From Macrostomum lignano (taxonomy: Eukaryota), in NCBI GenBank assembly GCA_002269645.1, contig NIVC01000084.1, positions 558,001 to 622,000 of the forward strand: 64,000 nucleotides of DNA. The letters run 5' to 3'. The notes beneath the pieces were generated by a model. That model did not search any database. It worked only from the letters and a program-made list of their open reading frames with translations, and was not told the DNA's origin. This document shows positions 1,521 to 55,574 of the stretch, piece after piece. Position 1 is the first letter of the stretch; each line of letters opens with the position of its first letter. The translations under genes were made by a program, and so were the position numbers.

Positions 1521-4500
1521 CTAGTTGGTCGCGTACATCTGCACAAACTCTCCGTAGTCGGTGAACCCATCGTTGTTAACGTCAACTTCGTTAATCATCT
1601 CTTTGACTTCGTCCATGGTCAGCTTCTCGCCGAGTTTCGTCATCACCTCCATCAGCTCGTTGCTGCTGATTTTCCTGGAGTTTTTTGTTGCATGGATTTT
1701 ATTGTAGGGGAACAGCAAGCACTCTACATGACTATTCCTTCATGCACATTATTCTGAGAATTGGTGTTGTTCGCTCATTCTACATGACTATTCCTACATG
1801 CACATTATTCTGAGAATTGGTGTTGTTCGCTCATTCTACATGACTATTCCTTCATGCACATTATTCTGAGAATTGGTGTTGTTCGCTCATTCTACATGAC
1901 TATTCCTACATGCACATTATTCTGAGAATTGGTGTTGTTCGCTCATTCTACATGACTATTCCTACATGCACATTATTCTGAGAATTGGTGTTGTTCGCTC
2001 ATTCTACATGACTATTCCTACATGCACATTATTCTGAGAATTGGTGTTGTTCGCTCATTCTACATGACTATTCCTTCATGCACATTATTCTGAGAATTGG
2101 TGTTGTTCGCTCATTCTACATGACTATTCCTACATGTACATTATTCTGAGAATTGGTGTTGTTCGCTCATTCTACATGACTATTCCTACATGCACATTAT
2201 TCTGAGAATTGGTGTTGTTCGCTCATTCTACATGACTATTCCTACATGCACATTATTCTGAGAATTGGTGTTGTTCGCTCATTCTACATGACTATTCCTA
2301 CATGCACATTATTCTGAGAATTGGTGTTGTTCGCTAATTCTACATGACTATTCCTTCATGCACATTATTCTGAGAATTGGTGTTGTTCGCTCATTCTACA
2401 TGACTATTCCTTCATGCACATTATTCTGAGAATTGGTGTTGTTCGCTCATTCTACATGACTATTCCTACATGCACATTATTCTGAGAATTGGTGTTGTTC
2501 GCTCATTCTACATGACTATTCCTACATGCACATTATTCTGAGAATTGGTGTTGTTCGCTCATTCTACATGACTATTCCTACATGCACATTATTCTGAGAA
2601 TTGGTGTTGTTCGCTCATTCTACATGACTATTCCTACATGCACATTATTCTGAGAATTGGTGTTGTTCGCTCATTCTACATGACTATTCCTACATGCACA
2701 TTATTCTGAGAATTGGTGTTGTTCGCTCATTCTACATGACTATTCCTTCATGCACATTATTCTGAGAATTGGTGTTGTTCGCTCATTCTACATGACTATT
2801 CCTTCATGCACATTATTCTGAGAATTGGTGTTGTTCGCTCATTCTACATGACTATTCCTTCATGCACATTATTCTGAGAATTGGTGTTGTTCGCTCATTC
2901 TACATGACTATTCCTACATGCACATTATTCTGAGAATTGGTGTTGTTCGCTCATTCTACATGACTATTCCTTCATGCACATTATTCTGAGAATTGGTGTT
3001 GTTCGCTCATTCTACATGACTATTCCTACATGTACATTCTGAGAATTGGTGTTGTTCGCTCATTCTACATGACTATTCCTACATGTACATTATTCTGAGA
3101 ATTGGTGTTGTTCGCTCATTCTACATGACTATTCCTTCATGCACATTATTCTGAGAATTGGTGTTGTTCGCTCATTCTACATGACTATTCCTACATGCAC
3201 ATTATTCTGAGAATTGGTGTTGTTCGCTCATTCTACATGACTATTCCTACATGCACATTATTCTGAGAATTGGTGTTGTTCGCTCATTCTACATGACTAT
3301 TCCTACATGCACATTATTCTGAGAATTGGTGTTGTTCGCTCATTCTACATGACTATTCCTTCATGCACATTATTCTGAGAATTGGTGTTGTTCGCTCATT
3401 CTACATGACTATTCCTACATGTACATTATTCTGAGAATTGGTGTTGTTCGCTCATTCTACATGACTATTCCTACATGCACATTATTCTGAGAATTGGTGT
3501 TGTTCGCTCATTCTACATGACTATTCCTACATGCACATTATTCTGAGAATTGGTGTTGTTCGCTCATTCTACATGACTATTCCTACATGCACATTATTCT
3601 GAGAATTGGTGTTGTTCGCTAATTCTACATGACTATTCCTTCATGCACATTATTCTGAGAATTGGTGTTGTTCGCTCATTCTACATGACTATTCCTTCAT
3701 GCACATTATTCTGAGAATTGGTGTTGTTCGCTCATTCTACATGACTATTCCTACATGCACATTATTCTGAGAATTGGTGTTGTTCGCTCATTCTACATGA
3801 CTATTCCTACATGCACATTATTCTGAGAATTGGTGTTGTTCGCTCATTCTACATGACTATTCCTACATGCACATTATTCTGAGAATTGGTGTTGTTCGCT
3901 CATTCTACATGACTATTCCTACATGCACATTATTCTGAGAATTGGTGTTGTTCGCTCATTCTACATGACTATTCCTACATGCACATTATTCTGAGAATTG
4001 GTGTTGTTCGCTCATTCTACATGACTATTCCTTCATGCACATTATTCTGAGAATTGGTGTTGTTCGCTCATTCTACATGACTATTCCTTCATGCACATTA
4101 TTCTGAGAATTGGTGTTGTTCGCTCATTCTACATGACTATTCCTTCATGCACATTATTCTGAGAATTGGTGTTGTTCGCTCATTCTACATGACTATTCCT
4201 ACATGCACATTATTCTGAGAATTGGTGTTGTTCGCTCATTCTACATGACTATTCCTTCATGCACATTATTCTGAGAATTGGTGTTGTTCGCTCATTCTAC
4301 ATGACTATTCCTACATGTACATTCTGAGAATTGGTGTTGTTCGCTCATTCTACATGACTATTCCTACATGTACATTATTCTGAGAATTGGTGTTGTTCGC
4401 TCATTCTACATGACTATTCCTACATGCACATTATTCTGAGAATTGGTGTTGTTCGCTCATTCTACATGACTATTCCTACATGCACATTATTCTGAGAATT

Positions 4501-7500
4501 GGTGTTGTTCGCTCATTCTACATGACTATTCCTTCATGCACATTATTCTGAGAATTGGTGTTGTTCGCTCATTCTACATGACTATTCCTTCATGCACATT
4601 ATTCTGAGAATTGGTGTTGTTCGCTCATTCTACATGACTATTCCTACATGCACATTATTCTGAGAATTGGTGTTGTTCGCTCATTCTACATGACTATTCC
4701 TACATGCACATTATTCTGAGAATTGGTGTTGTTCGCTCATTCTACATGACTATTCCTACATGTACATTCTGAGAATTGGTGTTGTTCGCTCATTCTACAT
4801 GACTATTCCTACATGTACATTATTCTGAGAATTGGTGTTGTTCGCTCATTCTACATGACTATTCCTTCATGCACATTATTCTGAGAATTGGTGTTGTTCG
4901 CTCATTCTACATGACTATTCCTACATGCACATTATTCTGAGAATTGGTGTTGTTCGCTCATTCTACATGACTATTCCTTCATGCACATTATTCTGAGAAT
5001 TGGTGTTGTTCGCTCATTCTACATGACTATTCCTACATGCACATTATTCTGAGAATTGGTGTTGTTCGCTCATTCTACATGACTATTCCTACATGCACAT
5101 TATTCTGAGAATTGGTGTTGTTCGCTCATTCTACATGACTATTCCTTCATGCACATTATTCTGAGAATTGGTGTTGTTCGCTCATTCTACATGACTATTC
5201 CTACATGTACATTCTGAGAATTGGTGTTGTTCGCTCATTCTACATGACTATTCCTTCATGCACATTATTCTGAGAATTGGTGTTGTTCGCTCATTCTACA
5301 TGACTATTCCTTCATGCACATTATTCTGAGAATTGGTGTTGTTCGCTCATTCTACATGACTATTCCTACATGCACATTATTCTGAGAATTGGTGTTGTTC
5401 GCTCATTCTACATGACTATTCCTACATGCACATTATTCTGAGAATTGGTGTTGTTCGCTCATTCTACATGACTATTCCTACATGTACATTATTCTGAGAA
5501 TTGGTGTTGTTCGCTCATTCTACATGACTATTCCTTCATGCACATTATTCTGAGAATTGGTGTTGTTCGCTCATTCTACATGACTATTCCTACATGCACA
5601 TTATTCTGAGAATTGGTGTTGTTCGCTCATTCTACATGACTATTCCTACATGCACATTATTCTGAGAATTGGTGTTGTTCGCTCATTCTACATGACTATT
5701 CCTACATGCACATTATTCTGAGAATTGGTGTTGTTCGCTCATTCTACATGACTATTCCTTCATGCACATTATTCTGAGAATTGGTGTTGTTCGCTCATTC
5801 TACATGACTATTCCTACATGCACATTATTCTGAGAATTGGTGTTGTTCGCTCATTCTACATGACTATTCCTACATGCACATTATTCTGAGAATTGGTGTT
5901 GTTCGCTCATTCTACATGACTATTCCTACATGCACATTATTCTGAGAATTGGTGTTGTTCGCTCATTCTACATGACTATTCCTACATGCACATTATTCTG
6001 AGAATTGGTGTTGTTCGCTCATTCTACATGACTATTCCTTCATGCACATTATTCTGAGAATTGGTGTTGTTCGCTCATTCTACATGACTATTCCTACATG
6101 CACATTATTCTGAGAATTGGTGTTGTTCGCTCATTCTACATGACTATTCCTACATGCACATTATTCTGAGAATTGGTGTTGTTCGCTCATTCTACATGAC
6201 TATTCCTTCATGCACATTATTCTGAGAATTGGTGTTGTTCGCTCATTCTACATGACTATTCCTACATGCACATTATTCTGAGAATTGGTGTTGTTCGCTC
6301 ATTCTACATGACTATTCCTTCATGCACATTATTCTGAGAATTGGTGTTGTTCGCTCATTCTACATGACTATTCCTTCATGCACATTATTCTGAGAATTGG
6401 TGTTGTTCGCTCATTCTACATGACTATTCCTTCATGCACATTATTCTGAGAATTGGTGTTGTTCGCTCATTCTACATGACTATTCCTACATGCACATTAT
6501 TCTGAGAATTGGTGTTGTTCGCTCATTCTACATGACTATTCCTTCATGCACATTATTCTGAGAATTGGTGTTGTTCGCTCATTCTACATGACTATTCCTT
6601 CATGCACATTATTCTGAGAATTGGTGTTGTTCGCTCATTCTACATGACTATTCCTTCATGCACATTATTCTGAGAATTGGTGTTGTTCGCTCATTCTACA
6701 TGACTATTCCTTCATGCACATTATTCTGAGAATTGGTGTTGTTCGCTCATTCTACATGACTATTCCTACATGCACATTATTCTGAGAATTGGTGTTGTTC
6801 GCTCATTCTACATGACTATTCCTACATTCCTACATTTTGGCGCCGCAGGCCGGCACTCATTTTGTCGCCACAGACAGGCACTCATTTTGGCGCCGCAGGC
6901 CGGCACTCATTTTGGCGCCGCAGACAGGCACTCATTTTGGTGCCGCAGGCAGGCACTCATTTTGGCGCCGCAGGCAGGCACTCATTTTGGCGCCGCAGGC
7001 AGGCACTCATTTTGGCGCCGCAGACAGGCACTCATTTTGGCGCCGCAGGCAGGCACTCATTTTGGCGCCGCAGGCAGGCACTCATTTTGGTGCCGCAGGC
7101 AGGCACTCATTTTGGCGCCGCAGGCAGGCACTCATTTTGGCGCCGCAGACAGGCACTCATTTTGGCGCCGCAGACAGGCACTCATTTTGGCGCCGCAGGC
7201 CGGCACTCATTTTGGCGCCGCAGACAGGCGCTCATTTTGGCGCCGCAGACAGGCACTCACTTTGGCGCCGCAGGCAGGCACTCATTTTGGCGCCGCAGGC
7301 AGGCACTCATTTTGGCGCCGCAGGCAGGCACTCATTTTGGCGCCGCAGGCAGGCACTCATTTTGGCGCCCTGAAGAAAAACTTTTGATTTCCTCACAACG
7401 GGTCACCATTAGGTGGAGGTGACAAAGCATTGCACAGTCTACCAAAAGCTTTTACTGTGAGAGGGACATGACTCATCGGGTCCCCTCCCCCCGATGGCGA

Positions 7501-10604: not shown

Positions 10605-11267
10605 AGCAATCTGAACCTCGACCTGAATAGCCGAAAAGATAGCCCTGAAAGATTGGCCGCTTATCTGATCAATGGCAGATTGCATCTCGAACAAGCCAAA
10701 GTCAAGCCATGCAAGGCTCCGCTAGAAGAGCACATATTGTTCCGGCAGAACCCAAGCTATGCAGGAAATTCAATCAGGAGGCTCCTTTGCCAGGCCAAGC
10801 AATCTGAGTTCCCCAACAGAATATAGTTTGATGAAGAATTTGATATGCACGGCAAATTGAGCACAGCTGACGAAGGCGGAACCGGCTGCCAAATTAACTT
10901 TGACAGCAGTTTTCTATGCAGGATTTTACAAGGGAATCAGCACAGACACTGCATTTACTCTAGAACCATATACAACTCAAACAATGCATTTTTGTTTAAA
11001 CGGAAATTCAACTATTGACACAACGAAAACTGCGTTAAAACTGACTGTTTTAACTTGGCAGGCGGCTTCACTGTCGTTAAAGCTGATAAATTTGGGCGAA
11101 CATTTCTGATTGGTCGAAGCACTGACAAGACCTTTAACTGGATGCGGAGCGGAGGCGCATGGACGCCTCCATGTAAGTCTGCGAAATACCTTCGCTTTTC
11201 TTTCGCTGAGTCAAGGAATCAAGAGACTTTCAATCAGCTGAATAAAATCCAACAAGTCAGAATTTAA
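10605..11267 (+). pseudogene. Possible decayed coding sequence of unknown family (221-codon frame, two internal stops)
   Basis: One frame runs SNLNLDL...QQVRI* with stops only at 10824-10826 (TAG) and 11016-11018 (TGA). No family recognised. Confidence 0.3.
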
Positions 11268-11315: not shown

Positions 11316-12770
11316 ATGCGACCAACTGCTTGGCTTGTTGCCGCTTGTGGTAGGTGCATCATGGCACATCGCTCGTATTTGCTTTATTTCAAGGTTTAAT
11401 GAAGTTTCACGTTGCTTGATTCGCATCATTACCATTTTCAGTTCTTGCATTCTCAACTGCTTCTGTCGACGGGGCATCAAGTGACATCGTAAGTGCGAAA
11501 TTCGATTTAGACAGTTATAGAAATTTATGGTTATTCTGGATTGAAGTGCTATTTGAATTTCTACTTCATTTCTGGTTGATTTTTACAGACTAAGGATGGA
11601 GTAACCGGAGTCCATGAGGTGACAGACTATCGACAAGAAACCAAGAAGTGGCTCTCCGACGGCTTCAGGAACAAGAAGTGGCTCTCCGATGGCTTTAGGA
11701 ACAAGAAGTGGCTCTCCGATGGCTTCAGGAACAAGAAGTGGCTCTCCGATGGCTTTAGGAACAAGAAGTGGCTCTCCGATGGCTTCAAGAACAAGAAGTG
11801 GCTCTCCGATGGCTTCAGGAACAAGAAGTGGCTCTCCGATGGCTTCAGGAACAAGAAGTGGCTCTCCGATGGCTTTAGGAACAAGAAGTGGCTCTCCGAT
11901 GGCTTCAAGAACAAGAAGTGGCTCTCCGACGGCTTCAGGAACAAGAAGTGGCTCTCCGATGGCTTTAGGAAGACGAAGTGGCACTCCGATGGCTTTAGGA
12001 ACAAGAAGTGGCTCTCCGACGGCTTCAGGAACAAGAAGTGGCTCTCCGACGGCTTCAGGAACAATAAGTGGCTCTCCGATGGCTTCAGGAACAAGAAGTG
12101 GCTCTCCGATGGCTTCAGGAACAAGAAGTGGCTCTCCGACGGCTTTAGGAACAAAAAGTGGCTCTCCGATGGCTTTAGGAACAAAAAGTGGCTCTCCGAT
12201 GGCTTCAGGAACAAGAAGTGGCTCTCCGATGGCTTCAGGAACAAGAAGTGGCTCTCCGACGGCTTCAGGAACAAGAAGTGGCTCTCCGACGGCTTCAGGA
12301 ACAAGAAGTGGCTCTCCGACGGCTTTAGGAACAAGAAGTGGCTCTCCGACGGCTTTAGGAACAAGAAGTGGCTCTCCGACGGCTTCAGGAACAAGAAGTG
12401 GCTCTCCGATGGCTTCAGGAACAAGAAGTGGCTCTCCGACGGCTTCAGGAACAAGAAGTGGCTCTCCGACGGCTTTAGGAACAAGAAGTGGCTCTCCGAC
12501 GGCTTTAGGAACAAGAAGTGGCTCTCCGACGGCTTCAGGAACAAGAAGTGGCTCTCCGATGGCTTCAGGAACAAGAAGTGGCTCTCCGATGGCTTTAGGA
12601 ACAAGAAGTGGATCTCCGACGGCTTTAGGAACAAGAAGTGGCTCTCCGACGGCTTTAGGAACAAGAAGTGGCTCTCCGATGGCTTTAGGAACAAGAAGTG
12701 GCTCTCCGATGGCTTTAGGAACAAGAAGTGGCTCTCCGACGGCTTCAGAAACAAGAAGTGGCTCCTCTGA
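11316..12770 (+). CDS. Secreted repetitive prohormone-like precursor, 420 aa: signal peptide, short spacer, 37 x (KK-WLSDGFRN)
   Basis: Exons 11316-11349, 11442-11488, 11589-12770. Introns 11350-11441 (GTAGGT..TTTTCAG, phase 1) and 11489-11588 (GTAAGT..TTTTACAG, phase 0). Spliced N-terminus MRPTAWLVAACVLAFSTASVDGASSDITKDGVTGVHEVTDYRQET is a typical signal peptide. Common repeat variants are synonymous in this frame. Confidence 0.85.
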
Positions 12771-12790
12771 TGGTTTCAGAAACAAGTGGC
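11641..12790 (+). repeat. 30-bp coding tandem repeat: 37 intact units plus one frameshifted unit
   Basis: Unit aac aag aag tgg ctc tcc ga(c/t) ggc tt(c/t) agg. Confidence 0.98.
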
Positions 12791-13552
12791 TTGTACCTGT
12801 CTATCTGTACTAAGCAAAACACCAAATGAAATGGACGAGTCGACGAAAGCAGCCATCGACCTGTAGTCAAGACAAATACATCTAAACTTTGGAATGCATT
12901 ACCACACTGTATACTTGCGTAGAACTACCCCAAAATTTACCGATCTCTTTTGAGACGGTATGTTGGAAATAAATCCGCAAGGTGAAGCACTATCCAGCAC
13001 AGAGAGCGCAGCAATTCATGTTTCACTTGTTGCTTTTCAGTTTGCTTAAATTTGCCAGTTGTGAAAGCACCAAGAAAATAATTGTTTCCGACGAAAAAAT
13101 AAATAGCAAATATTTGCAGGACGGCAGGACCACCGCTGACGCCAATTCTGCCCATTCCACTAACTTCTGAGCACACACAAGCGCGCCAATACCTGTAAGC
13201 AGTCACGCACTCATAAACACGCTCACACAGGGTGCACAGCGGCCCTTTGACTTTCTAATCGTTATTCATGTACATCTCTGTGCCTTGGAGATCGGCCCCT
13301 CAAACAACTAGACATTTTAAACAATGAAGCAACAACGTTATGCATTTCAATATATTGATTTTCAACTTGCCAAATTAATCAATTAAATTAACCAGATTTC
13401 AAGTACAGAATTTGAATTTAATCTGCAGCATAAAATAATATTAAAACGCATGTAAACAATGCGCAAAACAAAACAGTAGCAATTAGATATGATTTTATTG
13501 ATTATCTTAGAATATAATTAAAGTCGGACAGTGCATATTTGGATAGCAAAAC

Positions 13553-16500
13553 TTATTCGCCAAACTTGGACCTGGCAGCCGCGGCAATGAACGGCTCCAC
13601 CGCAGGCGACACAATGTACGAGTCGCAGTGGTAGCACCACACGGACAGATCGCTAAATGACAGAGCGATGACGTGGCCAGTAGACTCGCTGTGGCTCAGC
13701 ATGTGCTTAGACACGTACCTGCCGCAGTGCGTCTCCAGGCAGGCCAGGCAGAGCCAGTTCTCGCTGCCATCCGAGCAAGTCTGACAGACTGCTCGAGCGT
13801 CAACTCCGCGACCGTCGGCTATGCGAGTCACGTGACTCGGCTGGATCACGTGAGGACAATCCGATCGAGGATGAACGGCAAAAAATTGCTGATCCTCTAG
13901 AAGAAGAAATTCAAAACCGCCGACAGCTCCGCCAGAAGCAGCAGCAGCAGCAGTTGAAGAAGCTTCGATGAAGTCTGTCACCGACGTTGCGGCGGCGGAA
14001 ACGTCCAAATTGTCGAGTTCTCGGGCCAGCTGGTCCACCGAAATGTTGACGCTGTCAGCTGATCTTCACGGGGTTACGAGAGGGAATTAATGAAACATAT
14101 TAGTCTGCACAGTATTAATTCTATACATCAATGCTTTTAAACTGAACAATAATGAACGTAAAAGCGGATCTGTGGTACTATACCCAATAAACGCATTGTA
14201 AATCTGTTCGGGTGTGACTTTAGCGCCAATAAACACATTGTACTTATGTCTGCGTGGCTAGACTATAAAAAAAAAGTAACCTCTCACCTATTAGCATCTT
14301 CTGGCAGGCTGGTCACCCAGTTCGGGATGTCATCTGGAGTTAAAATTTAGCCAGTCAAAAAATATGCCTTTATTCACAATATTTTTAAGCAACAACTCAT
14401 ACCTGAAAACTTGAGATGCTTCCAATAAGCTTTGTGAATATCGATCACTTCCCTGATTGCTCTGACACCACTGAAAAGTTTTAACATTGAGTTTAACAGA
14501 TATTAATCAAATATATTTCTGGTCGAATGCAGATTGAACACGGGAGTGAATCTGGATAGAATCCGATTAGAATCTGGATAGAATCCGATTAGAATCTGGA
14601 TAGAATCCAATTAGAATCTGGATAGAATCCGATTAGAATCTGGATAGAATCCGATTAGAATCTGGATAGAATCCAATTAGAATCTGGATAGAATCTAATT
14701 AGAATCTGGATAGAATCTAATTAGAATCTGGATAGAATCCGATTAGAATCTGGATAGAATCTAATTAGAATCTGGATAAAATCCGATTAGAATCTGGATA
14801 GAATCCGATTAGAATCTGGATAGAATCCGATTAGAATCTGGATAGAATCCGATTAGAATCTGGATAGAATCCGATTAGAATCTGGATAGAATCCGATTAG
14901 AATCTGGATAGAATCTAATTAGAATCTGGATAGAATCTAATTAGAATCTGGATAGAATCTAATTAGAATCTGGATAGAATCCGATTAGAATCTGGATAGA
15001 ATCCGATTAGAATCTGGATAGAATCTAATTAGAATCTGGATAGAATCTAATTAGAATCTGGATAGAATCTGATTAGAATCTGGATAGAATCCAATTAGAA
15101 TCTGGATAGAATCCGATTAGAATCTGGATAGAATCCGATTAGAATCTGGATAGAATCCGATTAGAATCTGGATAGAATCCAATTAGAATCTGGATAGAAT
15201 CCAATTAGAATCTGGATAGAATCCGATTAGAATCTGGATAGAATCCGATTAGAATCTGGATAGAATCTAATTAGAATCTGGATAGAATCTAATTAGAATC
15301 TGGATAGAATGCGATTAGAATCTGGATAGAATCCGATTAGAATCTGGATAGAATCCGATTAGAATCTGGATAGAACCCGATTAGAATCTGGATAGAATCC
15401 GATTAGAATCTGGATAGAATCCGATTAGAATCTGGATAGAATCTAATTAGAATCTGGATAGAATCCGATTAGAATCTGGATAGAATCCGATTAGAATCTG
15501 GATAGAATCCGATTAGAATCTGGATAGAATCCGATTAGAATCTGGATAGAATCCGATTAGAATCTGGATAGAATCCGATTAGAATCTGGATAGAATCAAA
15601 TTAGAATCTGGATAGAATCTAATTAGAATCTGGATAGAATCCGATTAGAATCTGGATAGAATCCGATTAGAATCTGGATAGAATCCGATTAGAATCTGGA
15701 TAGAATCCGATTAGAATCTGGATAGAATCCAATTAGAATCTTGATAGAATCCGATTAGAATCTGAATAGAATCAGATTAGAATCAGGATAGAATCCGATT
15801 AGAATCTGGATAGAATCTAATTAGAATCTGGATAGAATCCGATTAGAATCTGGATAGAATCTAATTAGAATCTGGATAGAATCCGATTAGAATCTGGATA
15901 GAATCTAATTAGAATCTGGATAGAACCCGATTAGAATCTGGATAGAACCCGATTAGAATCTGGATAGAATCTGGATAGAATGCGAATAGAACCCATCAGC
16001 TCACTGAACATTGGGCACCAGCTGCTTGGGCAGCTGCAGGGGCGGCAGGCCCAGCAGAGAAGCCACACAATGGCACGAGGCCTCGCCAATAGACGCCAGA
16101 TTGTAGCCGCCCTCCAGCGCCAGCACGACCCGCCCACCAGCCAGGCCGCACAGCAGGTGAGTCAGGTGACCGTAGCAGGCAGGGGTGACCTTTAATCCGC
16201 CCAGCGGGTCGCCAACTGCTGCGTCGAAGCCAGCGGAGACCAGGACCAGGTCGGGATTGAACGACTGAGCAATTGGCAGCACAATGTGGTGGAAAGCGGC
16301 CAAGTACTCGGCGTCCCCGACTCTGCCCTGTGCATTTGAGAGTGCAGGTGGGTGGGGGCAAAGTTGAGGTTGAGAATTCAACTTGGGGACGGGTGACTTT
16401 ATGATTGATCATTGGAATCCTGAGGTTTTCATTGACTGACCCACAATCTTAATCCCCACTGGCCCAGAATCTGGACTTACTGACCCAGAATCTGTATCTA

Positions 16501-19500
16501 TTGACCCAGAATCTAAATCCCACTGACCCAGAATCTAAATCCTACTGACCCAGAAGTTGTTTCCCTTGACCCAGAATATAGACTCACTGACACAGAATCT
16601 AAATCCTACTGACCCAGAAGTTGTGTCCCTTGACCTAGAATATAGACTCACTGACCCAGAATCTAAATCCCACTGACCCAGAATCTGGACTAACCGACCC
16701 AGAACGTTCATCCCACTGACCCAGAATCTGGACTAACCGACCCAGAACGTTCATCCCACTGACCCAGAATCTGGACTAACCGACCCAGAATCTGGACCCA
16801 TTGACCCACACTCTTAACCCATTGACCTAGAATTTAGACTCACTGACCCAGAATTTGGATTCATTTACCCAGGATCTTTATCCCACTGACCCAGCTGCAC
16901 CCCTTGACCCAGAATCTGGACCCATTGAGTCAGAATCTAGACCCATTGAGTCAGAATCTGGCCCCCTTGATCCAGAATCTAGACTCACCGACCCAGAATC
17001 TGGACCCATTGAGTCAGAATCTGGCCCCCTTGATCCAGAATCTAGACTCACCGACCCAGAATCTGGACCCATTGAGTCAGAATCTAGACTCACCGACCCA
17101 GAATCTGGGCCCATTGAGCCAGAATCTAGACTCACTGACCCAGAATCTGGCCCTCTTGACCCAGAATCCGGACCCACTACCATAACATTAGAACTGACTC
17201 ACATTCCAGGGCACATTAACATTGTACCCCAATCCTTTGTCGCAGCCGACATTCTCCTTAGCGCCGCTACTACCAGGATAGAAGCGGCCAAAGTCGTAGC
17301 GGTGAAGGCTGATGTACAGCACAGAGTCGTCACTATAGAAAGCGTCTTGAACTCCGTTGCCGTGATGCACGTCCCAGTCTAGGATAAGTACGCGGCGTAC
17401 TCTATTAGAATGCCTAGTCTGAGCGTAACGAGCCGCCACCACTACATTGTTGATGAAGCAGAAGCCTCGAGGCTTGTCGGATTCTGCGTGATGCCCAGGC
17501 GGGCGGACTATTGCGTAACCGTTTCTACTGCGGCCGGAGCAAACTTCTTCCACCACTGAGAGCAGAGTGCCGCAGCTCAGCTGAGCGGCATCGTACGACA
17601 GCTGAAAAATCGGTTGCGGTTCTTCGACTGGATCAACTCTCATCCCAATTAGATTGGGCTAGTATTGGATCTCCGCCTTAGGAAGTGGCAGATACCTTAG
17701 AAATCTCACCCAACAGAGTGAGACAAGCTTGGAAATCTCACACTGACATAATGAGACACACTTGCAAATCTCACAGTAAAAGATTGAGAAAAACGTGGAA
17801 ATCTCACCTCTAAGGATTCGGGAAACCTCACCTCTAAGGATTCGGGAAATCTCACCTCTAAGGATTCGGGAAATTTCACCTCTAAGGATTCGGGAAACCT
17901 CACCCCTAAGGATTCGGGAAATCTCACCTCTAAGGATTCGGGAAATCTCACCTCTAAGGATTCGGGAAATCTCACCTCTAAGGATTCGGGAAATCTCACC
18001 TCTAAGGATTCGGGAAATCTCACATCTAAGGAGTCGGGAAATCTCACCTCTAAGGATTCGGGAAATCTCATCTCTAAGGAGTCAGGAAATCTCACCCCAA
18101 ATGATTCAGGAAATCTCACCTCTAAGGATTCGGGAAATCTCACCTCTAAGGATTCGGGAAATCTCACAGTAACAGACTGAGACAGACTTGGAAATCTCAC
18201 ACTGACACAATGAGACAGACTTGGAAATCTCTCCCCTAAAGATTTGAGAAATTTCACTCCTATGTAATAGACAAGAATTTTACAAGGTTTACAGACAGGT
18301 TAATTACAGTTTTAAACATCTCACCGGATGCACATAAAGTGAATCAAATCGACTTTGCAACTCGGCAAATCTGTCGCTCTCCGAGTTCAAATTTCTCCAA
18401 GCGGCCATCATGTCAAGATTGTCGCGAGTATGAAACAGCATCGCCTCTTCGTCTGTGCATCTGCGCGAGCTGGCAAATCGGCACAGTCCAGACAGGCCTT
18501 TGGCGCACAACTGATCGTAAATGTACACAATGCGCCTAGGCAGTTCCGGGTGGCTCCGGTCTAGCAGGTTCTCGTGTCTGCACATTTTACCGTCGTAAGC
18601 CAGACAGGTGCGACAATTATTAGCGTCGGAATCGGCAGGTCGAAGGTCGGCAAGGGCTGTGAGGCGGTCGACTTCTTTGGCGAAGGCGACTAGTTGCTCA
18701 GGAGTGAGCTCTGGATTGTACTCCACCCACGGATACTTCAGCTTGGTGGCGTGGCTGGAGTTCAAGGAGTTCAGTGGCGATGTGTGTCTGTGTTGTGTCT
18801 GTCACTCTGTCTGTCTGTGTGACTGTCACTCTGTCTGCCTGTCTGTCTGCCTGTCTGTCTGCCTGTCTGTCTGTCTGTCTGTCTGCCTGTCTGTCTGCCT
18901 GCCTGTCTGTCTGCCTGTCTGTCTGCCTGCCTGCCTGTCTGCCTGTCTGTCTGTCTGTCTGCCTGCCTGCCTGTCTGTCTGTCTGTCTGCCTGTCTGCCT
19001 GCCTGTCTGCCTGTCTGTCTGTCTGTCTGTCTGCCTGCCTGTCTGTCTGTCTGTCTGCGGCACAGTTCATCTTTTATTTGACTCTAGACGCATCTTTTGG
19101 ACACTTATCTCAAAAGTGCGTTGCAAATTAGCCATAATTATAATTTCGAACTCACGTTGAATTCAAGCTGAGATGCGATATATCCGGAATCAACATGTCA
19201 CCAGTGGAGCCCTGCATTCGCAGGCATTTCCAATACGGCCTCAAAGCTGTCAGGCAGTTCAGCAAAGTCTCTTTGAAGCTATCCGACGGCTCGCCCAGGG
19301 CCTCGAGCCGGGGACAAGCGTCGCCTAATAGCGTCCTGACTGTCATGGCAACGCCTTCGCTTAGGGAAGAGAGACAATAGCCTCCCTGCGGAAATTGGGA
19401 ATAGAATTTGAATGAAAGTAATCTCGATTCTCCCCTAATTACGTGTGATTTCCTCCCCCTAATAACCTGTGATTGTCTTCCCCTAATTAAGTGTGATTTT

Positions 19501-24140: not shown

Positions 24141-27100
24141 TCACGAGAATCTCAGGTCAGATGGCAGGTCAGTTGGCACGTAGATATCCCGGCAGCGTTC
24201 GTATAGAAATTTGTAAGTGTTGCGCTGGATTATCTCCTCTTCGTATAGGTCGTTGCGGAGCTGGCGCAGCCTGCAGTGACATATTTTCGTTGGGGAGTGG
24301 GAAACGAGTTTTGGATGGTGACGTGTTGTGGGTGACGGATCTGAGAGGCTGGCCTAGCAACTGAGGATCTGAAAGGCTGGCCCAGCAACTGAGGATCTGG
24401 GAGGCTGGCCCAGCAACTGAGGATCTGGGAGGCTGGCCTAGCAACTGAGGATCTGGGAGGCTGGCCCAGCAACTGAGGATCTGGGAGGTTGGCCCAGCAA
24501 CTGAGGATCTGGGAGGCTGGCCCAGCATTTGAGGATTTGGAAATATGGCCCAGCAACTGAGGATTTGGAAATATGGCCCATCAAATAAGGATCTTGGGAA
24601 TGTAGAAGTTGCCCAGTTACATAAAATTCAGGACTTGCTAGGATTGTGTTCATTACTGAACTTGATAAGCAACAATCCCCTTGATTTAAGCCTGACCTTG
24701 ACTGCGATTTGCCAATAGCGCCAGAGGCAGTCCCAGTCGCAGCACCGCCCTTAGCTCTGTCCTGACCAGCCTCGCCCAGCATAGATCGAACCTCCTGCTC
24801 CGTGAGGCTGATGCACCGTTTAATTGCCATCTCCCGGCTGGAGTGGGCGCACCGCAGCGATTCAAACAGCTCCTGACAGACGCGCCGGGGATCAACTTTG
24901 GAACGAAAATAAGCGGAAGCTGGCAGGCGACTGTTGAGCTCATTTTGAATCCGATCGTCAACCTTCCGAGCAGACTCAAGCTGCTTCTAGGTGAATTTTG
25001 GTTGCGATTAAAAATGCATACCTCACAAAAATATATATAAAAAATAACATATAACTTTGTACTTACAAATTCAATTCTTGTCTATAGATCAGTTTTAATT
25101 TTCAACTATTTTTAAAATAATGAAAAGAATATTTTTTCCCACTTTTTGCCCTGTTAAAACTAAGAATAAAATCTATATTTGTCAGATTTGCTACTACATT
25201 TACCATAGTCTATGTTATTTCATACATGCTAGAATTTTCATGCATATGTCTAAGGAGTGATATATAAGTGTTTTTTAATCATACTGTGTAATAAAAGTAT
25301 TATAGCTATTTGCTTTTCAGTTTTATTACTTAAGTTACAAATCATAGACATTATAAGTTTATTATTAAAGATTTTCAGTGATTTTCTTCCCCTAATTACC
25401 AGTGATTGCCTTCTTATAATTATCTGTGATTTTCTTCCTCAAATTAACTGTGATTTCCCCTAATTACCTGTGAATGCCTTTATGTAGTTATCTATAAGTT
25501 TCTTTCCCTAATAACTTGTGATTCCCCCCCCCTAATTACCTGTGAATGTCTTATCCTAATTACCAGTGATTTTCTTCCTCAAAATTACCTGTGATTTCCC
25601 CTAATTCCCTACATTTATTATTTAGGATTTTCTTCAACAAATGATCTTGATGTTATATCAGTAATGAGCCAACAGTAACAAAAAATAAAAATTAATTTTT
25701 TTTAAATTAAGTGTTTACAAAAGCTATATCTTAGCAAAACAATTGTGTTGACCTACAAATTTATTGCTATTGATTGTTTACTATAAAGGATAAACAGATT
25801 TATTATTTCAATTTGTAAACACAATTGACAATTTCATTAACTCATTATGAAAATGAACATAATAGGTTTATGTTGAAATTGTTTTTGAAAATTAACTTAT
25901 CATTAATATAGGCCTCCTCATAAGTTTCAAAAGGCAAGAAAAAGTTAATTTTGATAGTGACTTTTTTAATTCTAGTCTGTGGATTGTATCTATAATATAT
26001 ATTATTAATTAATATGACAAGGTCTTAAATAGTCATATGCTGTATTTATAACCTAGCATATAGTAGGTAGCTTAGGAAGCCAAGAATTGTTTGTATGCTA
26101 TTATCTAAAATACTATTAATTATACTATGCTATGTTCCTTTTCTACTGCTTAGTGCATTGGGCTTCTATTTGTTTATTGATATATATGATTTGGACATAA
26201 CCCAACTAAACATATAGTATACAAGCTTGGGATTATCTTGTAAAACTATATAACATTGACAATAATGAGTGATATTGAAACACATTTAAAACCACTTTTA
26301 ATAACTTGTATACAAATTAATATAACATAGGGGGGCCTAATCAATATCACTAATAAGCAAAAACAATATAGTCAAATTATATAGTAATGGTATTGCCTTT
26401 TACTATAATTGATATAACTGATCTACACTCATACATGCGCAACCTCCAAAATTCGGTCGGCCATGCGACTTAGTTTTAACAAAAATGTGATGTAGTTTTT
26501 GGCCAAAAATGCGACTTACATATAAAAAAGCCAAATGCAAATTTGGGTAAAGGGCAGAAGTAACTATGACTGTCTTATTTAGTCAAAATGCCTCATCAGC
26601 TACTTAGTACTACGACTTTGGTATTTTTTCAGGTGGGCATTTTTGCGACTTCCTTGGTTGGCCGCCAAATCAGTTGGCTGAATCGGACGACTTGGCCGAC
26701 TGTTGCGCATGTATGTCTACACTTATACTTAAAGCTGTTTACTAAGAGACTGGTATTGCTCTAAAGTATTATACTTTAATTATATTTTATTATTTATTAT
26801 ATTTAAGACTAAATAAAATTTGTTCTTTCTTTAATTAAAATAAATATTAAGAATTAAATATTTGTCTAAATAGGGGGCCTAGTATAATCTTTACTAATTC
26901 ATTTAGGGGCCTAATTTACCATAACTTTAAATGATATCAAACCAAATAGCAATGAAAATAGTTATTTTATCATTTATTAGGCCTATGATAATCTATAATA
27001 ATGATAAAAGACTAAAGAATGATTGACAGCAATATGCCAATAAAAATAGCTAAAATATAAAAAATGGTTAGGATTAGGCCTATATTCATCTTACCCTTAG

Positions 27101-49500: not shown

Positions 49501-52500
49501 CCTTTGCTGTCCCGGGCGATAAGGTTAGAGTTAATGAATTAGTTAATGAATTGTAACTATCTAAGTCATTTCTCTATAGCTATTTAGTCACTTCAAATCC
49601 CCAGGTGAGTTCATCATCATATCCCAAATCCCCGGGTGAGTTCTTCATCATCATATATCCCAGATCCCAGGTGATTTCTCCTCATCATATACCAAATCCC
49701 CTCGAGGTGAGTTCCTCACCATATCCCAAATCCCCAGGTGATTTCTCCTCATCATGTACCAAATCCCCTCGAGGTGAGTTCCTCACCATATCCCAAATCC
49801 CCAGGTGATTTCTCCTCATCATATACCAAATCCCCTCGAGGTGAGTTCCTCACCATATCCCAAATCCCCAGGTGATTTCTCCTCATCATGTACCAAATCC
49901 CCTCGAGGTGAGTTCCTCACCATATCCCAAATCCCCAGGTGATTTCTCCTCATCATATACCAAATCCCCTAGGTGAGTTCCTCACCATATCCCAAATCCC
50001 CAGGTGATTTCTCCTCATCATATACCAAATCCCCTAGGTGAGTTCCTCACCATATCCCAAATCCCCAGGTGATTTCTCCTCATCATGTACCAAATCCCCT
50101 AGGTGAGTTCCTCACCATATCCCAAATCCCCAGGTGATTTCTCCTCATCATGTACCAAATCCCCTCGAGGTGAGTTCCTCACCATATCCCAAATCCCCAG
50201 GTGATTTCTCCTCATCATATACCAAATCCCCTCGAGGTGAGTTCCTCACCATATCCCAAATCCCCAGGTGATTTCTCCTCATCATATACCAAATCCCCTC
50301 GAGGTGAGTTCCTCACCATATCCCAAATCCCCAGGTGATTTCTCCTCATCATGTACCAAATCCCCTCGAGGTGAGTTCCTCACCATATCCCAAATCCCCA
50401 GGTGATTTCTCCTCATCATGTACCAAATCCCCTAGGTGAGTTCCTCACCATATCCCAAATCCCCAGGTAAGTTCCTCATCATGTACCAAATCCCCAGGTG
50501 ATTTCTCCTCATCATGTACCAAATCCCCATGTGAGTTCCTCCTCATCATTTATCCCAGATCCCAGGTGAGTTCCCAATCATATCCATCATAGGCACTCGA
50601 TCGCTCCTTTCATCCCTTACTATCTGCAGGTAGCAAGTGAACGCTCTCACCCAGGCAGCCAGGATCGCCAAGCAGTGGGGCCGCTGCCCCACCTGTGGAC
50701 TCAGTCAGTCTATGCCCTGTGCTGCCTACTTAGGGACGGGTTTTTGCGTCCCCAAGAGCTGGATCCCATCGGCAGGCGTCTGGCTCTGGAGCCGAAGCCC
50801 GACTTGGTGGTGCAGGTGGTTGTTATCGCCGAGGATGCCAAGATAAAGAAAACTTTGCAGTCGAGATACGGGCTGAAGCAGGTGATTGTGGGTCAATATG
50901 CCTGTCAGTGTTAGATCAGGGGGTGGTGGGTGGCCCAGCAACTGGGGATCTGGGAGGCTGGCCCAGCAACTGGGGATCTGGGAGGCTGGCCCAGCAACTG
51001 AAGAGCTGGGAGGCTGGCCCAGCAACTGAGGATCTGGGCGGTTGGCCCAGCAACTGAGGATCTGGGAGGCTGGCCAGCAACTGAGGATCTGGAAGGCTGG
51101 CCCAGCAACTGAGGATCTGGGAGGCTGGCCAGCAACTGAGGATCTGGAAGGCTGGCCCAGCAACTGAGGATCTGGGAGGCTGGCCCAGCAACTGAGGATC
51201 TGGGCGGTTGGCCCAGCAACTGAGGATCTGGGAGGCTGGCCCAGCAACTGAGGATCTGGGCGGTTGGCCCAGCAACTGAGAATCTGGGAGGCTGGCCCAG
51301 CAACTGAGGATCTGGAAGGCTGGCCCAGCAACTGAGGATCTGGGAGGCTGGCCCAGCAACTGAGGATCTGGGAAGCTGGCCCAGCAACTGAAGAACTTAG
51401 CAAGCTGCACCAGTCGGAGACTTAAATCCCCTTCGAACCCGCCTAGGTGCAAGACTTCAGCGAAGTCCACTCGGCCACCAGAATCCGAGTTTTTCCGGCC
51501 AAAGTGCTCGGCCATTTCTACCGCCATCTCGGCCGGTGTCCGACGCTGGGCCTGAGCGGCCGTCCAATCAGCGATGTCGGCATCTTGGCTACCAGCCGTT
51601 TGTACAACGTCGGCTCTCGAACGGTGGCCTTCACCCCTCAGTTCCTGGATCACCACTCATTCTATTTAAGTCTGGACGTTAATTTCCTATTGGACCTGTT
51701 CCGCACCGATGTGGCCTACCTGAAGAGCACCTGGTCAGCCGTTGGCCGCCCGCTGTTCGTCATTCCGGTTTATCACTGGTATTTCAATCCGGACACTGCT
51801 GAGGCATCGCAGACTGCTCTGCTGACCACCATCAGGAAACTGCAGAGCGGTTATATTAACGGCACCAGGTGAAAAGAAGGCCACTGAACTACTGGGCTGA
51901 GGGATGTAGATTTTTTAAAGGCATTGCGGATGTTCTATAGACTGTTATATAGATTTACATAAAGTGTGTGATATTTCTCATAGAGTATGGGATCTTATAT
52001 ATATGGCTTGGATTCTATTTTAGAGTATGGAATCTTACTTTTAGAGTATGGGATCTTACTTGTAGGGTATGAAATCTTACTTGTAGGGTATGGGATCTAA
52101 TATGTAGGGTATGGTATCTTATTTTTAGGGTATGGGATCTTACGTGGTCTGGTGTGAGTCAACGTTTCGATTTATGAGATTCAAAATACGGTTTTAGAGA
52201 TATTTCATTTTTAAAAGGCTTTGAAGTCATTTTAGGGAACCAAATATCATAGTTTAATTTATAAGCAAACTCGTGAATCTCATTTCAGAGTCACTCTAGG
52301 CAATCTGGCTGACTTTGTGGACACCAGCTGCGTTACTCAGATGTCATTTTTGAACTCCAGCCAGAGCGGTGCGTGCTGGGACTGCGGACCTCTATGAAAC
52401 ATCTGGCTGGCCTAGCAACTTGGGATCTGGAAGGCCTAGCAACTGGGGATCTGGGTGGCCTAGCAACTGGGGATCTGGGTGGCCTAGCAACTGGGGATCT

Positions 52501-55357
52501 GGGTGGCCTAGCAACTGGGGATCTGGGTGGCCTAGCAACTGGGGATCTGGGTGGCCTAGCAACTGGGGATCTGGGTGGCCTAGCAACTGGGGATCTGGGT
52601 GGCCTAGCAACTGGGGATCTGGGTGGCCTAGCAACTGGGGATCTGGCTGGCCTAGCAACTGGGGATCTGGCTGGCCCAGCAACTGAGGATCTGGGAGGCT
52701 GGCCCAGCAACTGAGGATCTGGGAGGCTGGCCCAGCAACTGAGGATCTGGGAGGCTGGCCCAGCAACTGAGGATCTGGGAGGCTGGCCCAGCAACTGAGG
52801 ATCTGGGAGGCTGGCCCAGCAACTGAGGATCTGGGAGGCTGGCCCAGCAACTGAGGATTTGGGAGGCTGGCCCAGCAACTGAGGATCTGGGAGGCTGGTC
52901 CAGCAACTGAGGATCTGGGAGGCTGGCCCAGCAACTGAGGATCTGGGAGGCTGGCCCAGCAACTGAGGATCTGGGAGGCTGGCCCAGCAACTGAGGATCT
53001 GGGAGGCTGGCCCAGCAACTGAGGATCTGGGAGGCTGGCCCAGCAACTGAGGATCTGGGAGGCTGGCCCAGCAACTGAGGATTTGGGAGGCTGGCCCAGC
53101 AACTGAGGATCTGGGAGGCTGGTCCAGCAACTGAGGATCTGGGAGGCTGGCCCAGCAACTGAGGATCCCCCTCTCTCCTGTTCAGACGGGCTGCTGGCGA
53201 AGGCCAGGGCCACAGCGGCGAACGAGTCGGCCCTGTTCAGCCGCGGCCGCTGCCGCCTCGGTTCGACAGCCTCCGTCCACTCGAGGACTTTCGGCAGCAG
53301 CGAGTCATCGCCTGAGGACCAGTGCTCGGTGCGCACTCGTTCTCGACGTCAACCGCCGAGTTCAGCAGCTGCTTCTGCTGCCGCCGCCGCCACAGCTTCT
53401 CGTCGACGCAAGTCGCTAGTTTTGAGTAACGCCGTGTCGGAAGAGCTCGGCGAAGATCTGGACGTCACGGACGCCGGCTTCGGCCTCGATTCGTTCGCCA
53501 TCCATGCCGCCGCTGCCGCTGCTGCCGCGGCAACTTCATCGTTTGACGAGGACAGACAGCACAGCGTTGGTGAGTCTGAGTCTAGACTTCTCATGGGGAA
53601 TTCCTTGGATGTGGATAGACTTCTCATGGGGAATTCCTTGGATGTGGATAGACTTCTCATGGGTAATTCCTTGGTTGGGGATAGACTTCTCATGGGGAAT
53701 TCCTTGGATGGGGATAGACTTCTCATGGGGAATTCCTTGGATGGGGATAGACTTCTCATGGGGAATTCTTCAGTTAGGGATAAAATACCAAATAGGAAAT
53801 TCTTCAGTAAGTTTCTTCCCATCATACATGCGCAACTGCTGGCCGACCTGTCCGATCTGGCCACCGTAAATTGTGGTGGACCAGAGGTAAGTCGCAAAAA
53901 TGACACCCTAAAGAATACGGATGTAGTACTAATTAGATGTTGAGGCATTTAGGCCTGATAAGACAGTCATAGTTACTCCTGCCGTTTACCCAAAATAAAT
54001 TTAGCTTTAGGGTTTTTTTCACAGGTAAGTCGCATTTTTGGTCAAAAAATAAGTCGCATGGCCAGTGTAAATCAGGGGGATTGCGCATATATACTTCCCA
54101 TAGAAAATTCTTCGTAAGCCCGAGAGATTCAAGGATGAGTTCTGTTCGTCGCAGGCCGCAGGCAGGCCCAGCTCAGAAGCTCCGGTCTCGCATCGCTGCA
54201 GATGCCAAATCTTGGCCAAATGCTTGCCGAAGTCGGGCACTCGCCAGACGGCAATGCTAGTAAATTTAAAACAAAAAGTTTTTAGCGCCGCTTTAAAATG
54301 TAGCTCGCGGTTCTATTTATTGATTTATTGATTGACTTTGATTCGATGACTTTGATAATCCAATCATATGCTTTGCGTTGCCCAATTTAAAGCCGAATAT
54401 TGAATCCCCGAATCCCATAAACCGATAAACACATCCCACAAACAAATTCACAAATCCCATAAACAGATTCCTAAATCCCATAAACAGATTCACAAATCCC
54501 ATAAACAGATTCACAAATCCCCTAAACAGATTCACAAATCCCATAAACAGATTCACAAATCCCATAAACAGATTCACAAATCCCCTAAACAGATTCACAA
54601 ATCCCATAAACAGATTCACAAATCCCATAAACAGATTCACAAATCCCATAAACAGATTCACAAATCCCATAAACAGATTCACAAATCCCATAAACAGATT
54701 TACAAATCCCTAAAAAGATTCACAAATCCCATAAACAGATTCAGAAGTCCCATAAATTCCATAATTCCATAAACAGATTCACAAATCCCATAAACAGATT
54801 CACGAATCACATAAACAGATTCACAAGTCCCATAAACAGATTCACAAATCCTATAAACAGATTCACAAATCCCATAAACAGATACACAAATCCCATAAAC
54901 AGATTCACAAATCCCATAAACAGATACACAAATCCCATAAACAGATTCACAAATCCCATAAACCGATTTGTGAATTTCTAATCCCACAATATGTATCTTG
55001 CATCTCAAAACCCATATTTCATATTGTAAATTAGAAATTCCCAAACAATGCGGCATATTGCACAGCCTAAGAATTGGTAGTGTCAGCTTCAAATTCACGA
55101 CTTTAATCACTCTCAGACCACTCGTCTCCGTTGGCGATGGCCTACCAGCGACTGAACTCCGTGTGCGAGGGCTCCGGACTCAGACGGACCGCGTCTTGGC
55201 GAGCCGTCATCGAGGACTGCGAGGAGCTGTGCGAAGGGAAACTCGACAATAGCAGTGCGGGTTCTGTTCATGCTTTATTGGGACTTGATTTCGCGCTTGG
55301 GAATCGTGTTTATACTGTATTGTCTCTGTGTGCTGCGAAAAGCCTGTCTCTGGCACA

Positions 55358-55453
<96 letters not shown>

Positions 55454-55515
55454 TGACACACACACAGACAGACAGACAGACAGACACACAGACAGACAAA
55501 AAGACAGACAGACAT

Positions 55516-55574
<59 letters not shown>

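Follow-up and report, generated by a model that had tools for sequence, protein, structure and literature searches.

A 30-bp Minisatellite of Macrostomum lignano as the Probable Main Coding Exon of a Gene for a Secreted Decapeptide-Repeat Protein

Introduction

The genome of the flatworm Macrostomum lignano consists to about 15% of simple and tandem repeats, and 38.8% of its genes are trans-spliced (PMC5730564). A stretch of 64,000 nucleotides from contig NIVC01000084.1 of this species (assembly GCA_002269645.1, positions 558,001 to 622,000 of the forward strand), referred to here as the window and numbered from its first letter, harbors a tandem array with a 30-bp period that translates in one frame into repeated decapeptides, KKWLSDGFRN. 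The locus raises the question of whether such an array is one more minisatellite or the coding part of a gene and, if it is a gene, what becomes of the product. A preliminary description, made from the sequence alone, had proposed a hidden three-exon gene for a secreted precursor carrying 37 peptides of the WLSDGFRN type between dibasic sites, with an uncleaved gland or adhesive protein as the alternative. The present analysis indicates that the locus is probably a genuine gene encoding a secreted repeat protein, with the 30-bp minisatellite as its main coding exon. The full chain of events, in which the secreted precursor would be cut into WLSDGFRN-type peptides acting as a signal, is put forward as a tentative reading.

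Results

Structure of the Predicted Gene

Direct reading of the sequence bore out the two canonical introns of the preliminary description, which join in phase from the ATG at 11316. The coding exons lie at 11316–11349, 11442–11488, and 11589–12770 (Table 1). The amino-terminal part of the spliced open reading frame (ORF) reads MRPTAWLVAACVLAFSTASVDG followed by ASSDITKDGVTGVHEVTDYRQET, joined in full as MRPTAWLVAACVLAFSTASVDGASSDITKDGVTGVHEVTDYRQET, after which come the 37 ten-residue units. The product of 420 amino acids is composed of a signal-peptide-like amino-terminus of ∼22 residues, an acidic spacer of 23 residues, and 37 decapeptide modules. The exons showed GC contents of 0.56 (exon 1), 0.49, 0.48, and 0.53, as against 0.39 in intron 1 and 0.30 in intron 2, and a poly(A) signal, AATAAA, begins at 12968, which is 198 nt 3' of the stop codon. 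The gene had earlier been taken to end at 12813, but the stop found there proved to belong to the +1 frame. Because the degenerate 38th unit contains a 1-nt insertion, the frame changes, and the ORF ends as KKWLL followed by TGA, giving a protein of 420 residues. In the +1 frame, an ATG-initiated ORF of 374 amino acids, (MA[SL]GTRSGSP)n, overlaps the array from 11689 to 12813 and ends at a TAA codon.

The signal peptide was scored with a home-made heuristic of n-, h-, and c-regions. It recognized an n-region, MRPT, containing an arginine and an h-region, AWLVAACVLAF, whose best 9-residue Kyte–Doolittle mean was 2.97. The residues at −3/−1 of the candidate cleavage site were small (V-D-G, then A) by this heuristic, the result of which is affected by the choice of the first exon. 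The pro-segment that follows (residues 23–45) has an isoelectric point (pI) of 4.4. Another candidate first coding exon lies further upstream and joins exon 2 in a phase identical to that of exon 1; it could be used in place of exon 1 or be an artefact of gene prediction.

Table 1. Features of the predicted gene and its surroundings (coordinates of the window)
Feature	Position	Strand	Description
Possible alternative first coding exon	11142–11172	+	MRSGGAWTPP + 1 nt; donor GTAAGT at 11173; T at −3 of ATG
Exon 1	11316–11349	+	ATG 11316 (context caaagATGc, A at −3); codes for MRPTAWLVAAC(V), signal-peptide n- and h-regions
Intron 1	11350–11441	+	92 nt, phase 1; donor GTAGGT, acceptor TTTCAG
Exon 2	11442–11488	+	(V)LAFSTASVDG-ASSDI; predicted end of signal peptide and probable cleavage region (VDG, then ASSDI)
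Intron 2	11489–11588	+	100 nt, phase 0; donor GTAAGT, acceptor TTACAG
Exon 3, unique start	11589–11642	+	Acidic pro-segment TKDGVTGVHEVTDYRQET; motif HEVxxY..E..T kept in the paralog
Repeat array in exon 3	11643–12752	+	37 in-frame 30-bp units, KK-WLSDGFRN or one of 5 variant units
Degenerate 38th unit	12753–12770	+	1-nt insertion; KKWLL, then stop TGA 12768–12770
Probable 3' untranslated region	12771–12973	+	Degenerate array tail to ∼12790; poly(A) signal AATAAA 12968–12973

Gene Structure Compared With Chance

To be counted, a splice path had to use a donor of the form GTRAGT or GTARGT and a YAG acceptor preceded by a pyrimidine tract. Under these consensus rules, exactly one path led from an ATG within 400 nt upstream into the array, and it was signal-peptide-like by the heuristic. 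When the same rules were applied to 4000 positions drawn at random from both strands of the window, any two-intron path was found at 12 positions, any signal-peptide-like path at 16, and a spliced signal-peptide-like path at only one. The strength of the splice sites matters here, since with the bare GT–AG rule a signal-peptide-like path was obtained at 30 of 300 random positions. A spliced signal-peptide-like path was absent from the other arrays of the window (∼70 open frames of 39 arrays). Moreover, the 1 kb upstream of the array contained only three consensus donors (11173, 11350, and 11489), each of which is in phase with the ORF. For the antisense open frames, neither an ATG-led path nor a consensus donor was present within 900 nt upstream.

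Only one other array of the window had a signal-peptide-like lead-in, at 55358–55574 on the − strand, adjoining a (CTGT)n microsatellite. This lead-in, of low complexity and unspliced, was judged to be an artefact of the heuristic.

Composition and Variation of the Repeat Array

Tandem Repeats Finder (TRF) placed the array at 11642–12786, with a period of 30, 38.1 copies, 95% matches, and no indels. The counts given in the preliminary description, i.e., 37 decapeptides with 32 exact copies of WLSDGFRN, were reproduced: 31 units read KKWLSDGFRN and one NKWLSDGFRN, while the remaining five comprise two FKN, one FRK, one (T)KWH, and one WI variant. The common nucleotide variants, GAC/GAT (17 and 20 units), TTC/TTT (21 and 16 units), and also AAG/AAA and AGG/AGA, are all silent in the KKWLSDGFRN frame, as had been described.

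This silence had been offered as a sign of coding, together with the caveats that the same sites are silent in one antisense frame and that GAC/GAT sits at a CpG (GACGG); both caveats held. Among the 37 units, 10 distinct variants were found, of which 4 are silent in the proposed frame (18% would be expected); 36 of the 43 variant copies are silent, and these are accounted for by two high-frequency C/T variants. In the antisense SHFLFLKPSE frame, silence is at least as frequent (5 of 10 variants, 38 of 43 copies). The bias is thus only weakly indicative of coding; it is not significant on its own and is unable to pick the strand. Since the silent-variant argument fits the sense frame and one antisense frame alike, the choice of strand rests on the gene structure.

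Two readings that deny the proposed frame its role have to be weighed at this point. The first holds that there is no functional gene and that an ordinary 30-bp minisatellite without stops lies beside a chance or decayed signal-peptide-like ORF, the protein models and the paralog described below reflecting recent duplication plus ab initio over-prediction. The window holds 40 tandem arrays that make up 42% of its bases; the period is divisible by 3 in 16 of the 40, most of them lack indels, and open frames occur in many of them. Across the array studied here, four of the six frames remain open (KKWLSDGFRN, SGSPMASGTR, EPLLVPKAVG, and SHFLFLKPSE), and in purity and freedom from indels this array resembles its neighbors. 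An open frame therefore carries little weight, and together with the period divisible by 3 and the zero indels, it was rejected as evidence for a gene, these features being common to the neighboring arrays. The non-significant and strand-blind silent-site bias agrees with this reading, as do the clearly over-extended gene models that contain the array without domain support. A neutral minisatellite would be expected to lack gene structure, and chance would explain its frames and variants. What was found instead was a phased splice path of a kind met at 1 of 4000 random positions, with all three consensus donors of the upstream 1 kb in phase, a GC contrast between exons and introns, a poly(A) signal, and a paralog that keeps the frame in spite of fixed amino acid differences. 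In the face of these observations, a minisatellite devoid of gene function is considered unlikely.

The second reading is that the array codes in a different frame or on the opposite strand, as +1 (SGSPMASGTR)n, antisense (SHFLFLKPSE)n, or antisense (EPLLVPKAVG)n. These frames are open, silent variants are as frequent in SHFLFLKPSE as in the sense frame, and the +1 frame contains internal ATGs, runs to 12813, and is entered by some of the UniProt models. Against this stand the minus strand, with neither an upstream ATG-led path nor a consensus donor over the 900 nt mentioned above, and the +1 frame itself, in which the two common variants are non-synonymous (M/T and S/L) and which has no signal peptide and no upstream exon path. 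The excursions of the UniProt models into the +1 frame coincide with indels in the older assembly. Coding in any of these three frames is accordingly regarded as very improbable.

Database Models and a Diverged Paralog

The product was compared by phmmer with 1.84 billion representative proteins, which gave 355 hits with E-values of at most 0.001; 30 hits were inspected among the best 150. Among these 30, the only relatives were UniProt entries of Macrostomum lignano, the others being unrelated low-complexity repeats. Protein searches with the gene product as query matched UniProt entries of this species alone. The entry A0A1I8HYT9 was 96% identical to the product, and further models were A0A1I8FF56, A0A1I8FXQ2, and A0A1I8FTA2, of which A0A1I8FXQ2 is 85 amino acids long and carries the source name "Secreted protein." All four models include exons 2 and 3, read in the KKWLSDGFRN frame. 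Their translation starts at the upstream exon MRSGGAWTPP and not at 11316. Hence, the gene is mis-modelled rather than hidden, as exons 2 and 3 are already present in UniProt in the same frame.

Two of the models, A0A1I8HYT9 and A0A1I8FF56, run on beyond the array through unique islands at 13437–14066, 16001–16346, 17242–17514, 18605–18784, and 19156–19377, which lie between downstream arrays. Apart from a sub-threshold SOUL match, no Pfam support was found for the islands. They were rejected as part of the gene, since domain support is lacking and the ORF is provided with a stop and a poly(A) signal of its own. The long models are probably over-extended ab initio chimeras, and the automatic names attached to them (CH domain and ANK_REP_REGION) look unfounded because the downstream parts show no such domains.

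A diverged paralog was identified in the Macrostomum lignano model A0A1I8IJ38, which contains 11 units of KKW[I/L]GDGFRS after a lead-in ending in ...HEVSGYDDDERLT. Its alignment with the gene (HEVTDYRQE---TKKWLSDGFRN) showed 63% identity over 43 residues with a 3-residue in-frame gap. The KK pair, the Trp, the DGFR, the Arg at P4, and the pre-repeat motif HEVxxY..E..TKKW are kept, while peptide positions 2, 3, and 8 differ. The units of the paralog follow a higher-order I-I-L pattern. As judged from the protein sequences, this points to a small gene family in which the arrays would have diverged with frame and motif kept, a finding that is supporting and not conclusive. The paralog segment, used as query in a word-index search of proteins, gave no match, and exact look-ups of A0A1I8HYT9, A0A1I8FF56, A0A1I8FXQ2, and the ORF of the window in a contig collection gave none either. 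Directly upstream of the KKW[I/L]GDGFRS units, at residues ∼230–480 of A0A1I8IJ38, there is a second translated array of ten residues, (GKMRSASRDA)n, which could be another translated minisatellite or a neighboring repeat gene.

Predicted Product and Its Possible Processing

The predicted mature protein is ∼48.7 kDa with a pI of 10.8 and a net charge of about +72. AlphaFold2 run without an alignment gave a confidence (pLDDT) of 48 and no predicted fold, and the only Pfam match was a spurious low-complexity one (PMG/PF05287), with no real domain. The absence of a predicted fold and of a Pfam domain would fit either a precursor or a disordered polypeptide. The occurrence of W or F every 5 residues suggested a pentapeptide-repeat (β-helix) protein; this candidate was rejected as the i−2 positions are K and D, which are not small, and there was no Pfam match. 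Rfam gave no match in the window.

In the reading preferred here, the protein would enter the endoplasmic reticulum, and the signal peptide would be cut off after VDG. In the secretory granules, a PC2-type convertase would cleave after each K-K, with a basic residue at P4, and a carboxypeptidase would then remove both lysines; the module reads [R/K]-N-K-K, cleavage, W-L-S-D-G-F-R-N. Each precursor would yield ∼32 copies of the octapeptide WLSDGFRN and five variants. The octapeptide is predicted to be neutral, with an [M+H]+ of 994.474. As the KK pairs of the repeat units are nowhere preceded by Gly, the products would be non-amidated, a point on which the preliminary description had reasoned correctly. 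The released peptides may serve as a secreted signal of neuronal, endocrine, or exocrine nature. The array itself would have been built and kept uniform through minisatellite-type unequal exchange.

The arrangement of the dibasic sites argues for such processing. Multi-copy proneuropeptides have been mined with a pattern that combines a signal peptide with at least five [KR][KR] sites 5–25 residues apart (PMC8557429), and the product has 36 KK sites spaced by 8 residues, of which 35 are in an [R/K]-x-K-K context. A PC2 homolog is present in Macrostomum lignano (PMC4490696). Given the [R/K]-x-K-K sites and PC2, cleavage into a neuropeptide appears plausible on sequence grounds, and the basic residues at P1, P2, and P4, invariant and conserved in the paralog, are in favor of it along with the acidic spacer.

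The alternative named in the preliminary description, an uncleaved secreted protein, would leave the gene structure as it is, and the evidence for a real gene applies to it equally. The product would then be a ∼49-kDa cationic, Trp/Phe-rich disordered gland material or coating, with mucus, rhabdites, adhesive-associated glands, the prostate or seminal fluid, and egg-associated secretions as candidate sources and with cation–π and electrostatic binding as its likely action. Cationic-aromatic adhesives built from decapeptide repeats form an established class, with mussel foot protein 1 as an example. The composition of the product (20% K, 9% R, 9.5% W, and 9% F, with no predicted fold), its length, the units without spacers, and the K-K rather than K-R sites speak for this alternative, and the Macrostomum lignano adhesive protein Mlig-ap1 has secreted repeat regions that are extremely rich in K and R (PMC6410801). 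The strict [R/K]-x-K-K at the unit boundaries, which is kept in the paralog, and the acidic pro-segment resemble a design for processing, and the product is without Tyr/3,4-dihydroxyphenylalanine (DOPA) and has, by Pfam, none of the vWD, EGF, and lectin domains of flatworm adhesives. The mass-spectrometry supplements of PMC6410801, which cover footprints and tails, contained neither the tryptic peptide WLSDGFR nor its variants, a weak negative with regard to an adhesive role. An intact secreted product is somewhat less probable than the processed precursor and has to be taken seriously as its rival.

Besides this composition and the features of the array discussed above, further observations weigh against the processed precursor and, in part, against the gene itself. 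Gene predictors in the Macrostomum lignano genome routinely translate minisatellites, and the paralog A0A1I8IJ38 is known as an ab initio protein model only. A word-index search with the amino-terminus and two repeat units returned two UniProt models only, and no transcript-derived protein across the exon 1/exon 2 junction. Full-text literature searches gave no match to the peptide or its sub-strings, and the UniProt family members are likewise undescribed. The signal peptide was assessed by the home-made heuristic, and with the alternative first exon it becomes weaker (best 9-residue Kyte–Doolittle mean of 1.66 versus 2.97). As regards cleavage, K-K is reportedly less used as a convertase site than K-R or R-R (a statement attributed to Veenstra, 2000), and 37 copies without spacers between the units are atypical. 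Planarian prohormones have been defined as shorter than 200 amino acids (PMC2953531), which the precursor of 420 residues exceeds; this limit is a working filter and not a biological requirement.

Other Tandem Arrays of the Window

Tandem arrays elsewhere in the window include those at 1723–6827, 24337–24599, 50931–51391, 52401–53167, and 61052–61118, and one of the arrays is a 56-bp satellite with 91 copies of 98% identity. A 28-bp unit, GGATCTGGGAGGCTGGCCCAGCAACTGA, is present at four distinct sites, and one of 24 bp occurs at both 19431 and 25378. The recurrence of the 28-bp and 24-bp units suggests that minisatellites are carried along by a dispersed element or by local duplications.

Discussion

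The predicted gene was compared with several known systems. It shares with multi-copy proneuropeptides, e.g., the FMRFamide, Antho-RFamide, and pedal-peptide precursors, a signal-peptide-like start, an acidic pro-segment, and many near-identical short peptides bounded by basic residues. The FMRFamide precursor of Aplysia and the Antho-RFamide precursor of Renilla contain ∼28–36 copies, and the 37 copies found here are at the top of the known range. Unlike in these precursors, the sites are K-K with an Arg at P4 instead of K-R or R-R, there is neither an amidation Gly nor a spacer, the DNA copies are ∼95% identical as in a minisatellite, and the peptide is without known relatives. With the paralog A0A1I8IJ38 and the UniProt near-copies of the same species, alongside which it would make up a small family, the gene has the module KKWxxDGFRx and the lead-in HEVxxY..E..TKKW in common; the paralog differs in having ∼11 units of W[I/L]GDGFRS where the gene has 37.

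The preliminary description had seen in the peptide a resemblance to the pedal peptide/orcokinin type. Members of that type are ∼12–20 residues long, and their consensus combines x-[F/L]-D-x-[I/L] at the N-terminus with ..GF.. at the C-terminus. The likeness extends to non-amidated peptides, many per precursor, and to a '..S.GF..' element. In contrast, WLSDGFRN has 8 residues and, by inspection, is without the N-terminal motif, no homology to this type was found by phmmer in the hits inspected, and there was no relevant Pfam match. Membership was therefore rejected, and of the earlier interpretation, it is the secreted, repetitive, precursor-like gene that stands, on account of the structure statistics, the GC contrast, the poly(A) signal, and the paralog.

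With cationic gland and adhesive repeats, such as the KR-rich regions of Mlig-ap1 (PMC6410801) and mussel foot protein 1, the product has in common a highly basic short tandem repeat in which Lys/Arg are combined with aromatic residues. It differs from Mlig-ap1 in its size (420 versus more than 5000 amino acids) and in the absence of vWD, EGF, lectin, and TSP domains and of Tyr/DOPA. An adhesive of the Mlig-ap1/Mlig-ap2 type was rejected on these grounds, i.e., none of the domains by Pfam, a far smaller size, and peptides absent from the supplements of PMC6410801.

The locus represents a predicted peptide-repeat family that is undescribed, is carried on a minisatellite, has no detectable relatives outside Macrostomum lignano among the hits inspected, and is mis-modelled in the databases. 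Should the protein stay intact, it would be a compact cationic-aromatic decapeptide-repeat secretion of some interest for the gland biology of flatworms and for bio-inspired adhesives or coacervates. If it is expressed and processed, it would be an undescribed peptide family of very high copy number in a flatworm model amenable to RNA interference, in situ hybridization, and transgenesis, and because these methods work well in Macrostomum lignano, the function of the peptide is directly testable. A further lesson would be that, where genomes are rich in repeats, real secretory genes are concealed or garbled by the masking of tandem repeats and by ab initio models. The locus also offers a concrete case for studying the role of unequal exchange in setting the peptide dosage of prohormone genes.

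It is conceivable, though we would not yet call it likely, that WLSDGFRN and W[I/L]GDGFRS form a new family of non-amidated signaling peptides, so far confined to Macrostomum lignano, whose precursor genes are literally minisatellites. If so, the copy number (37 versus ∼11) and the sequence of the peptides would evolve through array turnover in a genome of which ∼15% is tandemly repeated, and the locus would provide a live example of the birth and amplification of high-copy neuropeptide or pheromone precursors.

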